Of a DNA stretch of 64,000 nt, positions 39,301 through 44,697 are shown piece after piece; position 1 is the first letter of the stretch; each line of letters begins with the position of its first letter. Position numbers and translations under genes: made by a program. The stretch is taken from the sequence record NC_006883.2. One strand, 5' to 3'. Below the pieces are notes generated by a model. That model did no database searches. It saw only the letters and a program-made list of their open reading frames with translations, and was not told the DNA's origin.

Positions 39301-39761
39301 TTGAAGGTGCTAGTGTTACTTACATAGAAACTGAGGATGGAAATTATAGATATGATTCTCACACCCAAGTTGATCCAAATCAAAACTTCTATACAATATC
39401 AAGGATAAAGCGTAGTCCTCAAATAAACTGGAAGGAAAACCCTGCTGGTGTTGCATTTGAAATTTATTGTTATGATGATTCTGGAAATAAAGTAGTTGCA
39501 GTTGATTCTAGTCCTCTTGGTTCTGAAGGTACTGTATGGGGTGCTGCCCAATTTAGCTATTCTGTTGATAATGTTAATTTAGCAGATCCACTTCACAACG
39601 TAGATGGATTCTCCAGTCCAGTTGATCCTAGTTACAATGTTCCTAGAGCATTATCTTCTTCTGGTTATGAGATAATAGGACAACCAACAGTACCAACAAC
39701 TTATTCAGTAAGAGCTAAGAATGGTGGAGGAAGCACCACAGCAAGCAAACAACTTAAATAA
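36318..39761 (+). CDS. Gly-rich adhesin-like structural protein with repeated inserted modules
   Basis: SGEIKFSQLRSNF...ISASELF N-terminus; polyglycine motifs (GGIYGAGGKGG, GGKIYGGGGGG); Cys-rich loop; three copies of a ~60-aa module. Confidence 0.65.
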   Translation: MGISVTKAGPYFGSGEIKFSQLRSNFKETSSGSISASELFRNTNLYDREPITPDSTENDQIASDPFPVSVSWDTTYGPAYVAGQNYVEAMPYSTNYPRGSFDYYFGGVKVGTLDLDTATQTYIELGDIRYDSHTQQPAEWTVIDPMSHISGQNYVELTTPTQQFPAGTFKYYWDSVLQGTLNIQGATVDYVEVTNQYGSFRFKGGTLQADGTYSIERSKLTQNFYSISKVERTIGTGGSGPFRYSGVGKNLKASQFRNSIKRYTANQSGNDQFLDMGLKSGSGGIDWDGTNNLDASGVGGNYQRNVQKIINITGIAYSDDEGTNGSVGGGGRGHTKKAAAKLVMPNPLKALNTRLHVSGGIYGAGGKGGFFGASHTPQDEGDPGKDGGPALSISHGGIESITYIHVEGGKIYGGGGGGEQGIQGEWPVAAGVCDLGGYTSCSGGGTVCTTGGGYVAGYNEGCHGSGSGGSCGPGEISASLHIATLPCPDGSGYGTISATYCYTQTCVTTPRTCSYTSYGSYTSTLPIQGRGGAGGNGAAGVPGSPNYQAQSSGSAGTQDVDAKCNSGGTLGGAKNSSPGGTGEDGGQHGSPGGSNAGKSPAASGLSQGEGGGKGGAAVCGQYFKTPLLGNTGSSNVRGTIGNQCDGTTSPPIIVPNAPTVTMGDVNYIRFNYPDLDGTQTQTLNVTGTVSAKFAHMWNDKNDYGRGMDGIKIYKPDGSVLWSSVFNVDFSDPGSSIPQTYYSPQLTITEGIYPVEFINLNSRNQGGTDSNGKPYLKAGHLLEIGQKMFFVDDHENDRNQEVYILPNGTDTIWQKSYITGTHGSASDANGWAGDTSSEYVGMNQYWSAFMRRLAYWENNSDPKTQSGAEPSFFQAWSFNPPITRGVNEYRLRAQSDNDCKFFIDQTFQIAETSKYDNSGVDVLDVPINYSFVNGVNASVRVQCFNRQPNNISWNTINAPGYVAGQNYVVFTTATTQYPRGTFEYYWGGVKVGTLNIEGASVTYIETEDGNYRYDSHTQVDPNQNFYTISRIKRSPQINWKENPAGVAFEIYCYDDSGNKVVAVDSSPLGSEGTVWGAAQFSYSVDNVNLADPLHNVDGFSSPVDPSYNVPRALSSSGYEIIGQPTVPTTYSVRAKNGGGSTTASKQLK
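36554..39296 (+). repeat. Dispersed direct repeat inside the 1147-aa gene
   Basis: Exact 24-mers ATATGTTGCTGGACAAAATTATGT (36554 and 39194) and GGTGGTGTTAAAGTAGGAACACTT (36633 and 39273). Confidence 0.9.
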
Positions 39762-39764
39762 TAC

Positions 39765-39793
39765 TTGACACTGTTCGAGATTTCTGTTATACT
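39765..39793 (+). promoter_or_regulatory. Sigma70-type promoter
   Basis: TTGACA, 17 bp, TATACT, ending 6 nt before ATG 39800. Confidence 0.8.
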
Positions 39794-39799
39794 TTTATT

Positions 39800-40381
39800 A
39801 TGAAATTTACTCTTGCTATAGGAAACCCTCCTTATGGTGTAGGAGGGAATCTTGCTATAAAGATATTAAATAAAACTTCTGAGATCACAGATGATATTAG
39901 GTTTGTATTACCTACATCTATGAGGAAACCTTCTTGTCAGAATAAGATCAAGTCATATCTTCATTGTGAAGTTGATGATGATCTAGATGCTGCTACTTTT
40001 CCTGGTGGAATAAGTGCAGTAAAACAGTATTGGAAAGTAAAAAACACATCGAGATTTGCAAAAGGGGTGAACGAGATTCCTATGCACAGGGAGCATCCTG
40101 ATTTTGAATTTCTAGATTACAAAGATAGATTTGAGGCAGATGTTTTTATTGGTGAGTATGGATGTGGTCCTAGTGGAGTAGTAAAGACTGAGGATTTTAC
40201 ACACTACGCTAAAGGACATCACTTTCTAAGTGTTAAATCACCAGAAGTAATTAAGAATCTACTAGAGTTTGCTCCTAAGTTTAGAGAAGTAGCAACAGTA
40301 ACTAATGGTCGATACCATTTCGGTAAGAATGATTTGATTACCACTTATATTAAATGTTTAGATGAAAAAGAACAAGCATAA
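39800..40381 (+). CDS. Amino-DNA methyltransferase, catalytic/TRD half (motif IV NPPY)
   Basis: Begins MKFTLAIGNPPY, then IRFVLPTS; no SAM-binding motif I. Confidence 0.75.
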   Translation: MKFTLAIGNPPYGVGGNLAIKILNKTSEITDDIRFVLPTSMRKPSCQNKIKSYLHCEVDDDLDAATFPGGISAVKQYWKVKNTSRFAKGVNEIPMHREHPDFEFLDYKDRFEADVFIGEYGCGPSGVVKTEDFTHYAKGHHFLSVKSPEVIKNLLEFAPKFREVATVTNGRYHFGKNDLITTYIKCLDEKEQA

Positions 40382-40760
40382 TATACAAACTGGATCTAAT
40401 ATTGAGCGATCTGATGAAAGAATAAAAGAAACCCAAGAGGTATTCACTCCTCGTGAGTTGGTAGAATTGATGATAGATGAGATTGCGGTTTCGTTATTGA
40501 AAGATCCTAGCAGCAAATTTATTGATAATTGTGCTGGTAGTGGCAATTTCTTAATTGGACTAAAGGAACGACTCTGCTTGTATCATAGTGAGAAGCACGT
40601 TTTAAATCACATGCTTTACGCAGTAGAATTGCTAGAGGACAACCATAAGGAACTCTGTGGTCGTTTGGGTGTGACAACTCATCATCCGCACTATGTTTGT
40701 GCAGATGCCTTAGAATACGACTATAGTTTTGGTGAACCGATAGGAGTGTTGAAATTTTAA
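40362..40760 (+). CDS. Amino-DNA methyltransferase, SAM-binding half (motifs X, I, II, III)
   Basis: EVFTPRELV, FIDNCAGSGNFL, LYAVEL, CADAL; no motif IV. Confidence 0.78.
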   Translation: MKKNKHNIQTGSNIERSDERIKETQEVFTPRELVELMIDEIAVSLLKDPSSKFIDNCAGSGNFLIGLKERLCLYHSEKHVLNHMLYAVELLEDNHKELCGRLGVTTHHPHYVCADALEYDYSFGEPIGVLKF

Positions 40761-40824
40761 TTTATATAACTAACTCTGTTAGGATTGTAGGACAGGCTTT
40801 ATAATTTTTTAAGAACCAAGGGGG

Positions 40825-40853
40825 TTGCACACCCTCTTTTTTTATGCTACAAT
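40825..40853 (+). promoter_or_regulatory. Sigma70-type promoter
   Basis: TTGCAC, 17 bp, TACAAT with extended TG. Confidence 0.7.
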
Positions 40854-40904
40854 GAAATTGTTGAGAAGGATTTCTCGCAAATTGGACAATTAATTTATTA
40901 CAAA

Positions 40905-42368: not shown

Positions 42369-43559
42369 ATGCCATTACGTCCACATCAATCTCTTGCTTT
42401 GGGTGCTATGGCAAACCATACCAAGGGGCAAATCATAGTACCTACTGGAGGTGGTAAAACAAAATGCATGATACAGGATGCTAAAAGAGTATTTCTTACG
42501 CAAGATATTGCAACTATCGTTGTAGTTGCTCCACGCATCCTATTGGCAGAGCAACTATGCTCTGAGTTTATGGAAGAAATAAATGTAAAGGGACGCATTA
42601 AAATAATGCACGTTCATAGTGGTGAGACTAGGCATTTTTCTACGACTAATGTCGATGATATTAGATACCATAATATGTTTTGCTATGATAATAATAAGCA
42701 TCAGTTAATTTTTACTACATATCACTCACTTCATAGAATACAAGAGAGTAATATTGTAGTGGATACTGTTTACTTTGATGAGGCACACAATAGTGTTAAT
42801 AGGAACTTCTTCCCTTCTACTAAATTTTTTGGAACTGGAGGTGCTAGTAGGAACTTTTTCTTTACTGCTACTCCTAAGCACAGTCTTACTCCTTTCAAAG
42901 CTGGAATGAATGATAGAGAGGTATATGGTGATGTAATTATTAATGTTCCAGCACCTAAGTTAGTTAAAGAGGGTTACATCCTACCACCTAAAGTTCATGT
43001 ATATAAGAGTCGTTTACTTAGAAAAGATGAGATCTATTCTGAAGTAGAGTCAGATCAAATGATTAGTGCTATTGATAATTTAGAAGTGGATAAGGTTCTT
43101 ATCTGTGCTAAATCTACTAAGCAAATCATTGGTCTTCTATCTCAATCTGAGTTCTGCTATGAGTTGAATATGCGTGGTTATTCTTGGATGACTATCACAT
43201 CAAGGACAGGTGCTATTATTAATGGACAGAAGGTAGGTAGAGATGAGTTCTTTAGAACTCTTAATGCTTGGGGTAAGGATGATGAGAAGAAATTTGTGGT
43301 ATTGCATCACAGTATATTGGCAGAAGGTATAAATGTTAAAGGATTAGAAGCAGCGTTGTTTATGCGTAATATGGATTTCATTACCATTTCTCAAACGATT
43401 GGTAGAGTAATTCGTTTGGGTAATGATAAGAAGACACATGGTAAAGTATGTGTTCCTGTGTATAATAATGTAGGAATCTCTACTGCCAGAAGAGTTGAAG
43501 CAGTTGTAGATACAGTATTCAATCAAGGTCAACCAGCAATTTCAGTAATTACAAGATGA
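42369..43559 (+). CDS. Superfamily 2 helicase (type III Res-like)
   Basis: VPTGGGKT (Walker A), FDEAHN (motif II), FTATP (III), ILAEGINV (V), QTIGRVIR (VI). Confidence 0.92.
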   Translation: MPLRPHQSLALGAMANHTKGQIIVPTGGGKTKCMIQDAKRVFLTQDIATIVVVAPRILLAEQLCSEFMEEINVKGRIKIMHVHSGETRHFSTTNVDDIRYHNMFCYDNNKHQLIFTTYHSLHRIQESNIVVDTVYFDEAHNSVNRNFFPSTKFFGTGGASRNFFFTATPKHSLTPFKAGMNDREVYGDVIINVPAPKLVKEGYILPPKVHVYKSRLLRKDEIYSEVESDQMISAIDNLEVDKVLICAKSTKQIIGLLSQSEFCYELNMRGYSWMTITSRTGAIINGQKVGRDEFFRTLNAWGKDDEKKFVVLHHSILAEGINVKGLEAALFMRNMDFITISQTIGRVIRLGNDKKTHGKVCVPVYNNVGISTARRVEAVVDTVFNQGQPAISVITR

Positions 43560-43732
43560 ACATTAAAGAAGATGAATACATGTCTAGTGATGTGTGGAAA
43601 AGAAATATTCCACCAGTTACTAATTTTAAAAGAGGAAGTGCCTACAATCAATTTGGTATGTGGGTTATGTGGATTTACTATCTTATAATTCCTACGATGA
43701 TAATAAGATTAATTTGGGATTTAAACAAATGA
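43556..43732 (+). CDS. Small membrane protein (58 aa; not in ORF track)
   Basis: MNIKEDEYMSSDVWKRNIPP...GMWVMWIYYLIIPTMIIRLIWDLNK; ATGA-coupled at both ends. Confidence 0.55.
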   Translation: MNIKEDEYMSSDVWKRNIPPVTNFKRGSAYNQFGMWVMWIYYLIIPTMIIRLIWDLNK

Positions 43733-44697
43733 GAGACACTATTCTATTTGGAGATTGTAGAGATACACTCAAAGAGTTTGATGAGAAAGCAAGGATGTGT
43801 GTTACATCCCCACCTTACTATGGTCTGAGAGACTATGGTGGTGAAGAATCACAGATAGGACAAGAGCAAAGTCCTGAAGAGTTTATTGATGAGTTGGTCA
43901 AAGTATTCAGAGAAGTAAGGAATGTGCTTACTGATGATGGAACTTGTTGGGTAAACTTGGGTGATAGTTATTACAATTACAGGAAGGATGGATGTATTCC
44001 TAAACAAACATTTGCAAAGAATAGACAAGATCTACCTGAAACAACACCCAGAAGATCTAATAAGTTAAAAGGATTGAAAGAGAAGGATCTTATTGGTATT
44101 CCTTGGATGTTTGCGTTTGCTATGAGGGCAGATGGATGGCATTTGAGACAGGATATTATATGGCACAAACCTAATCCTATGCCTGAGAGTGTGAGAGATA
44201 GATGCACTAAGGCACATGAATATATCTTCTTGTTCAGTAAGCAGAAGAATTACTTCTATGATAATGAAGCAATCAAGGAGGATGCTAAAGATTGGGGAAC
44301 CAGAGATAGGAGTAAAGGTAAGTACACAAGTAATAATGATTATGGACAGACTCCACACTCAGGTTTAACTAAGAGTTATGCTAAGAAGAACAAAAGATCA
44401 GTATGGAGTGTAACAAAGAAACCATACAAGGGAGCTCACTTTGCAACATATCCACCCGATCTGATTGAACCCTGTATCCTCGCAGGAAGCGAGAAAGGAG
44501 ATATTGTGCTTGATCCATTTATGGGTAGTGGAACTACTGCTGCGGTGGCAAAATCGCTAGGTAGAGATTATATTGGATGTGAATTGCACGAAGACTATGG
44601 TGATCTTATACGCAAAAGAGTAGGTGAGTATGAACGATCTGTGCCAGTTATGGAAGTGACACAGTCACCTTTACTTGATGCTATAAATGGGTTATAA
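43729..44697 (+). CDS. Beta-class DNA methyltransferase, probably N4-cytosine
   Basis: VTSPPY (motif IV), IIWHKPN, HFATYPPDL, VLDPFMGSGTT (motif I). Start moved to ATG 43729. Confidence 0.92.
   Translation: MRDTILFGDCRDTLKEFDEKARMCVTSPPYYGLRDYGGEESQIGQEQSPEEFIDELVKVFREVRNVLTDDGTCWVNLGDSYYNYRKDGCIPKQTFAKNRQDLPETTPRRSNKLKGLKEKDLIGIPWMFAFAMRADGWHLRQDIIWHKPNPMPESVRDRCTKAHEYIFLFSKQKNYFYDNEAIKEDAKDWGTRDRSKGKYTSNNDYGQTPHSGLTKSYAKKNKRSVWSVTKKPYKGAHFATYPPDLIEPCILAGSEKGDIVLDPFMGSGTTAAVAKSLGRDYIGCELHEDYGDLIRKRVGEYERSVPVMEVTQSPLLDAINGL

Follow-up and report, generated by a model that had tools for sequence, protein, structure and literature searches.

Two overlapping cyanophage genes likely to encode complementary halves of one adenine-type DNA methyltransferase

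The window analysed here is a stretch of 64,000 nucleotides from sequence record NC_006883.2. Its interval 39700-40900 (1,201 nt) is 100% identical to the genome of Prochlorococcus phage P-SSM2, at the same coordinates; an independent second record of this phage is also 100% identical across the interval, and phage P-SSM5 is 99.4% identical. Two open reading frames lie there, ORF A (PSSM2_036) and ORF B (PSSM2_037), both annotated as hypothetical in GenBank and placed in PHROGs families 5172 (A) and 4376 (B), which are both listed as of unknown function. Each is a single-copy gene in P-SSM2, found by tblastn in one place per record. The features of the locus are as follows.

39765..39793, plus strand: near-consensus sigma-70-type promoter-like site (TTGACA, 17 nt, TATACT, with TG), matching 11 of 12 consensus positions
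39800..40381, plus strand: ORF A (PSSM2_036, 193 aa), catalytic half (motifs IV-VIII) and C-terminal target-recognition domain, from the sequence, alignments of relatives and the model of a 76%-identical longer variant
39824..39835, plus strand: motif IV, NPPY, residues 9-12 of A, from the sequence and invariant in 58 relatives
40362..40760, plus strand: ORF B (PSSM2_037, 132 aa), SAM-binding half with motifs X, I, II and III, from a Pfam match, the model and fold matches
40362..40381, plus strand: overlap of the last codons of A with the first codons of B, 20 nt, with B in the +1 frame, from the sequence
40443..40451, plus strand: motif X core, F28-T29-P30 of B, from the sequence and conservation in 57 relatives
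40518..40550, plus strand: motif I, FIDNCAGSGNF, residues 53-63 of B, from the sequence and conservation in 57 relatives
40626..40706, plus strand: from the motif II acid E89 of B (40626-40628) to motif III D115 in ADAL (40704-40706), from the sequence and the model strands
40818..40846, plus strand: intrinsic-terminator-like hairpin and T run, 58 nt past the stop codon of B, from the sequence

The ORF coordinates and ends, the motif sets, the 20-nt overlap and the order of A then B given in the preliminary description are present in the sequence exactly as described there. ORF A starts with MKFTLAIGNPPY, from motif IV, and has no SAM-binding motifs; ORF B ends with ...YDYSFGEPIGVLKF and has no motif IV, and the motif content of the two is complementary. 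The letters KF, common to the end of B and the start of A, were considered as a scar of duplication and rejected as such: they are shared in P-SSM2 and P-SSM5 only, and in other relatives B ends with ...EQFF.

The pair is flanked by promoter-like and terminator-like sites of its own. The -10 element ends 6 nt before the ATG of A, which could leave the mRNA almost or entirely leaderless; despite this position, a contig from an RNA library begins some 100 nt farther upstream. In a marine metatranscriptome, one contig of 1,052 nt spans 39692-40738, that is, A plus B. This would fit a single transcript, though contigs do not prove one and DNA carry-over is possible. The long contigs of two culture RNA libraries stop at 40817/40818 and restart at 40837/40872, at the hairpin, and these breaks hint at a terminator there. 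One metagenome contig joins 39458 to 40797 and skips 1,338 nt that are exactly the unit of A and B with its promoter. It may represent a variant without the cassette, or the join is perhaps spurious, its shorter side having only 21 letters.

Two neighbours of the pair deserve mention. The ResIII/DEAD helicase gene PSSM2_039 (42369-43559) lies within two genes of it in P-SSM2, and in phage Bellamy and several metagenome lineages (loci L014, L017, L024 and L010) a helicase gene of this type is likewise adjacent to the pair or at most two genes away; in other relatives the gene directly before A or B encodes a large protein that is ResIII-like or a 'restriction subunit'. This neighbourhood could reflect a functional module or no more than synteny. 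The other neighbour, PSSM2_041 (43660-44697), is annotated as dam and has a strong match (2.7e-58) to PF01555 (N6_N4_Mtase), a family that matches neither A nor B. Its protein, AAX44419.1, is placed among methylases with cytosine-N4 motifs by Iyer et al. (2021, PMC7824862), so the label 'DNA adenine methylase' may be wrong. Farther along, near 54-56 kb, P-SSM2 has a restriction-modification pair with a methylase of its own.

ORF B has the characteristics of a SAM-binding half. The conserved columns in the alignment of its 57 relatives are the FTP of motif X (P30 invariant, F28 and T29 nearly so), the two glycines of motif I (G59 invariant, G61 nearly so) and a DN pair past motif II; motif III was assigned by reading the sequence and by aligning fused relatives. 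B matches the Pfam family N6_Mtase (PF02384) with 25.9 bits, the cut-off being 20.4, over profile positions 21-86 of 311, which represent the part from motif X to motif II. Its AlphaFold model (pLDDT 91) begins with the motif X helices and continues with three strands, the model strands including residues 85-89 and 111-113. The best matches of this model among solved folds are the SAM-binding halves of gamma-class N6-adenine methyltransferase domains: MmeI (Z 8.9, 108 residues aligned), HsdM of EcoKI (Z 7.7) and residues 26-156 of CamA (Z 7.2, rmsd 1.8), with a further match to residues 10-109 of M.BseCI. Searches of solved structures by sequence, with A or with B, gave no meaningful match.

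ORF A has no match in Pfam or NCBIfam. Over its whole length it is homologous to the last ~185 aa of phage adenine methyltransferases that consist of one chain of 267-278 aa (180 aa, E 1e-15) and are encoded by Pseudomonas phage KIL1, rV5-like coliphages and phage ph0011, and in the alignment of its 58 relatives some 70 positions are invariant in addition to NPPY. A 248-aa variant, 76% identical to A in the common part, was modelled with pLDDT 79. Residues 1-145 of this variant match complete class I methyltransferase folds with Z about 13, and its full length matches M.TaqI (Z 11.4, 232 residues), CamA and M.BseCI. The P-SSM2 protein corresponds to residues 62-248 of the variant model and thus has strands beta4-beta7 and the recognition domain, without beta1-beta3.

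The two halves can be laid end to end on single-chain relatives. On protein P0043, residues 15-126 of B fall on residues 14-126 and residues 3-135 of A on 128-287; on P0057, residues 21-130 of B fall on 6-111 and residues 1-52 of A on 106-156. The junction in P0057 reads ...FDYWGG followed by MKFDVVVGNPPY, so the start codon of A corresponds to an internal methionine of the fused forms. Of the features expected of a gamma N6-adenine methyltransferase, the SAM-binding motifs X, I, II and III are found on B, while motif IV, motifs V-VIII and the C-terminal recognition domain are found on A; the order X-I-II-III-IV-...-TRD on one chain is replaced by two ORFs with the catalytic half first. Each gene lacks what the other carries, as is characteristic of two-chain methyltransferases, and each genome in which an A-only gene was examined also holds a B. 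That A and B are complementary halves of one amino-methyltransferase, cut between motifs III and IV, is strongly supported by these sequence comparisons, and the two most likely work as a two-chain enzyme. We consider it likely that PSSM2_036 and PSSM2_037 are, more specifically, the two chains of one gamma-lineage (M.TaqI / Eco57I / MmeI-like) N6-adenine-type DNA methyltransferase. The preliminary description had proposed one gamma enzyme cut between motifs III and IV: the complementarity of the halves is borne out by the tiling and the folds, but a simple cut as their history is not, because the closest relatives of A have an N-terminal half of their own.

We infer from these features how the pair would assemble and act, on which base and sequence, and in what biological role. 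B would supply the SAM pocket, with motif X and strands beta1-beta3, and A would supply the pocket for the target adenine, with NPPY and strands beta4-beta7, together with the DNA-recognition domain. In the methyltransferase fold the SAM pocket and the target-adenine pocket lie at the ends of two neighbouring strands, beta1 and beta4 (PMC7544214). Both chains would be made from one short bicistronic message; the start of B inside the last codons of A suggests translational coupling, for which the 20-nt overlap is the likely site. Assembly would then pair beta1 of B with beta4 of A at the centre of the sheet and so rebuild the usual seven-stranded fold. The methylated base is probably adenine at N6, since NPPY favours this target, and the complex would methylate phage DNA, escape from host restriction being the most plausible use.

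The division into two genes is widely kept. Relatives of B are encoded in 194 stretches of IMG/VR, of which we surveyed the best 80, at 73-100% identity. An A homologue lies directly upstream on the same strand in 79 of the 80; the remaining locus begins within B at the end of a contig. A survey for a conserved A-B order or for fused forms had been suggested in the preliminary description, and relatives show both, the order in 79 of the best 80 loci and the fusions set out below; single-ORF relatives, which would have pointed to an assembly artefact or to decay, are not the pattern in a pair that is split in 79 of 80. The overlaps measure 14, 20, 26 or 38 nt, with B in the +1 frame at 79 of 79 loci from this set, and these lengths differ by multiples of 3, as expected when both reading frames are maintained. 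Across the same 79 loci the split is kept to an A identity as low as 68%, and the same layout recurs in P-SSM5, in S-SKS1, in several pairs of S-CAM7 and in four lineages from marine and freshwater metagenomes. In the comparison chosen as the least saturated, that of P-SSM2 with a marine contig 92% identical to it (dS about 0.35), A has a dN/dS of 0.119 and B one of 0.103, values by which both genes are judged to be under purifying selection. The junction is free of indels in the contigs of four data sets: two culture RNA libraries, a metatranscriptome and a metagenome. In S-SKS1 the annotated GTG start of B (L007:1988-2470) removes the conserved KNKHN N-terminus; the frame is open upstream, and an ATG near 2029 would give an overlap of ~84 nt with the 459-aa A-type gene that precedes it.

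Of the 67 B domains that are near-complete, the standalone form accounts for 49, B-A fusions for 9, A-B fusions for 4 and joins to other regions for 5. The permuted A-B fusions include the 415-aa protein of Aeromonas phage PX29, which starts with MRFDYMIANPPY and has motifs X-I-II-III at its C-terminus, and the proteins P0030, P0090 and P0155. The permutation of P0030 can be read in profile coordinates, positions 75-156 of Eco57I falling on residues 2-64 and positions 20-118 of N6_Mtase on residues 271-373; homologue searches with P0030 and P0090 gave too few full-length relatives for a good alignment of the fused A-B form. A split pair outside the cyanophages (L027) consists of a 294-aa protein starting with MKFDYIVGNPPY and, immediately after it, a 149-aa B that is the nearest neighbour of the B part of PX29 in the weakly supported B-domain tree. 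At another locus (L029, B'-A followed by B) the gene for a 371-aa enzyme in gamma order overlaps by 4 nt the standalone B gene that comes next, whose product is 31% identical (E 1e-15) to the enzyme's own N-terminal half, and this resident half has lost the FTP of motif X. In ACG-2014f the halves are unlinked: B lies near 36 kb and a 301-aa A-only gene starting with MKFDVVIGNPPYQ lies near 135 kb, a distance of ~100 kb, so B would act in trans there.

Some relatives depart from these arrangements. In six proteins (P0035, P0040, P0042, P0051, P0100 and P0154) a B-type half is fused to regions without motif IV or a recognisable catalytic half. The ACG-2014f isolate Syn7803C24 encodes a 337-aa A-type protein (L013:3321-4334) with the C-terminal recognition module twice in tandem, the repeated block being THPDFEF...TTYI. 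In Klebsiella phage KpV477 (L008:23-1926) the A-type half is broken into two ORFs, of which the first continues in frame a region whose N-terminus is GIY-YIG-like, and after them comes a B-type ORF of 158 aa; this locus may be a decayed or endonuclease-invaded copy. Phage Bellamy has a 187-aa ORF, gene 87 (L010:1939-2502), between the Eco57I-domain gene 86 and the B gene 88, and a search with gene 87 gave no family match.

The closest relatives of A tell us something of its history. They come in two lengths, about a fifth of them having an extra ~60 N-terminal residues with the pattern LLIVGDPxGxH, then PENIWVWED, then KINxVEDL, which models as beta1-alphaA-beta2-alphaB-beta3. An extension of this kind is also present in S-CAM7 gp056, in an ACG-2014f isolate and in a large restriction-like protein of phage MA01, each with a B gene nearby. 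It is without motif X and without the second glycine of motif I, and we would guess that it is a weak or relic site. In profile comparison the extension does not resemble B (hhalign probability 0.2%): B is a SAM-binding half from an Eco57I/MmeI-like lineage, different from the N-terminal half that relatives of A have of their own. The extension switches between present and absent at least 2-3 times among A proteins of 68% identity or more, from which the resident N-terminal half appears to have been lost at least 2-3 times among close relatives of A. Because this resident half is unlike B, P-SSM2 can be read as a case in which a resident SAM half was replaced by a trans-acting half encoded downstream. 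The P-SSM2 protein looks like an A that has lost its own SAM half, with an Eco57I/MmeI-type half encoded downstream, and not like the product of one gene cut in two. Recent duplication of the lost N-terminal half of A as the source of B was considered and rejected for the P-SSM2 lineage on the lack of profile similarity, while it holds for L029.

These data bear on whether A and B belong to one enzyme at all. B could instead be a small SAM-binding protein that acts independently, for instance as a partner of other proteins or as a factor that sequesters SAM, and A a DNA-binding remnant that does not methylate. The persistence of B beside A variants modelled as complete folds is in keeping with this, and where those longer variants have beta1-beta3 of their own B may do more than fill a gap, or something else; B domains are, moreover, also fused to non-methyltransferase regions, and the standalone form is the commonest architecture (49 of 67). 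However, NPPY and many residues of the catalytic half are invariant in A, with dN/dS of 0.12, though A has no SAM site, and its own N-terminal half has been lost repeatedly only where B is present. The adjacency of A and B at all 79 informative loci from the best 80 of 194, and the existence of fused relatives in both orders, also argue against two unconnected proteins, an explanation that we consider unlikely.

A programmed +1 ribosomal frameshift in the overlap would yield a single A-B chain with the motif order of the beta class, like that of PX29, instead of or besides two chains. The natural A-B fusions, an A-rich run within the P-SSM2 overlap and the +1 position of B at 79 of 79 surveyed loci (from the best 80 of 194) are what such a mechanism would lead one to look for, but the constant frame is expected anyway from overlap lengths that differ by multiples of 3, and the four different junction sequences have no common slippery sequence. 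Almost all B genes have an ATG of their own, conserved in position ahead of the conserved KNKHN, the 4-nt overlap of one S-CAM7 pair puts its B in the other frame, and the A and B of ACG-2014f are ~100 kb apart; we therefore rate frameshifting as very improbable. That the split is an artefact, or that a permuted single-chain methyltransferase has recently decayed into a frameshifted pseudogene, has next to no standing: the ORFs do differ by a single-base frame shift and fused relatives do exist, but two independent P-SSM2 sequences and P-SSM5 agree, contigs derived from reads have no indels, the split is kept in 79 IMG/VR loci down to an A identity of 68% and both ORFs are under purifying selection, which together exclude the artefact and pseudogene readings.

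Two complementary chains thus remain our preferred interpretation, and their relatives suggest a route by which a permuted order might arise. The pair had been described at first as a possible permutation intermediate. This idea survives in that B-A fusions, separate A and B genes, B'-A followed by B, and A-B fusions all occur within the B family; the relatives do not bear out its form as one gamma enzyme that was cut and swapped. We tentatively propose, with confidence a little short of an even chance, that B is a portable, trans-acting SAM-binding half that serves many unrelated phage catalytic/recognition subunits (the 193-aa, 301-317-aa and PX29 types and the C-termini of large restriction-like proteins) and that its family preserves every step to permutation. 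The gamma-order fusion (B-A) would come first; a full enzyme with an extra half (B'-A followed by B) would be the second state; the resident half would then decay and be lost, leaving A and B as in P-SSM2; and fusion into a beta-like order (A-B, as in PX29) would complete the series. This order of events is not drawn from the B-domain tree, which is poorly resolved (5 of 64 branches starred).

The pair can be compared with several known systems. Gamma N6-adenine methyltransferases (M.TaqI, CamA, M.BseCI, MmeI/Eco57I-type domains and HsdM) are like it in their motifs, the folds of their halves and their C-terminal recognition domain, but they are single chains in the order X-I-II-III-IV...TRD, whereas A and B are two polypeptides divided at the beta3/beta4 boundary with the catalytic half encoded first. 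In type I systems HsdM has the complete catalytic domain on one subunit and HsdS has recognition on the other; here the catalytic fold itself is divided, and A carries motif IV and the recognition domain together. At the level of gene order, A then B is simply the motif order of the beta class (PF01555: M.PvuII, CcrM and PSSM2_041 of P-SSM2), IV...TRD...X-I. However, A and B are similar to the gamma families PF02384 and PF07669 and are on two chains, the one-chain order being found only in relatives such as PX29 and P0030. The 415-aa PX29 protein and its relatives (phrog_11371) have the same halves in A-B order, with a B part 36% identical to that of P-SSM2, but they are single polypeptides with a different recognition domain; the PX29 protein is annotated as hypothetical.

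Natural two-chain methyltransferases are known among the C5-cytosine enzymes, M.EcoHK31I being one. In M.AquI, another, the cut lies between motif VIII and the recognition domain (PMC5944983). M.AquI and M.EcoHK31I resemble our pair in building one methyltransferase fold from two genes, both of which are needed in those enzymes; they differ in modifying cytosine at C5, in being cut between motif VIII and the recognition domain and in having the normal gene order, whereas A and B have amino-methyltransferase motifs (NPPY), a cut between III and IV and a permuted order. A model of duplication with subsequent truncation has been put forward to account for circularly permuted methyltransferases (Jeltsch 1999; Peisajovich, Rockah and Tawfik 2006; both cited from PMC5944983), and the same source describes circular permutants and split forms made in the laboratory from M.HaeIII, M.SssI and M.MpeI, the active permutants of M.HaeIII starting between motifs II and III, in III, or between III and IV. 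The last of these starts is the cut seen between A and B, and the intermediates with redundant segments resemble the natural loci with B'-A followed by B; the laboratory forms are, however, engineered C5 enzymes, while the states seen around A and B occur in nature, involve an amino-methyltransferase and lead through two separate genes instead of an in-frame tandem fusion. A literature search, of incomplete coverage and thus not proof, found no amino-methyltransferase in nature that is divided between motifs III and IV, and no mention of these cyanophage genes. To our knowledge, no two-chain amino-methyltransferase in nature has its cut at the central beta3/beta4 switch point.

If this interpretation is correct, the pair is possibly the first natural two-chain amino-methyltransferase that is cut at the beta3/beta4 switch point. 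Models of permutation have so far been tested only on engineered enzymes, and the B family gives natural examples of the split, redundant and fused states. Tools for targeted methylation have to date been made from artificially split C5 enzymes; natural adenine-methyltransferase halves that assemble by themselves would be a part type for such tools. PHROGs 5172 and 4376 are abundant 'hypothetical' families of marine T4-like cyanophages, occurring in hundreds of ocean and lake viral contigs, and a function can now be proposed for both. P-SSM2 itself, a model phage with other methyltransferases, would gain a further DNA-modification activity.
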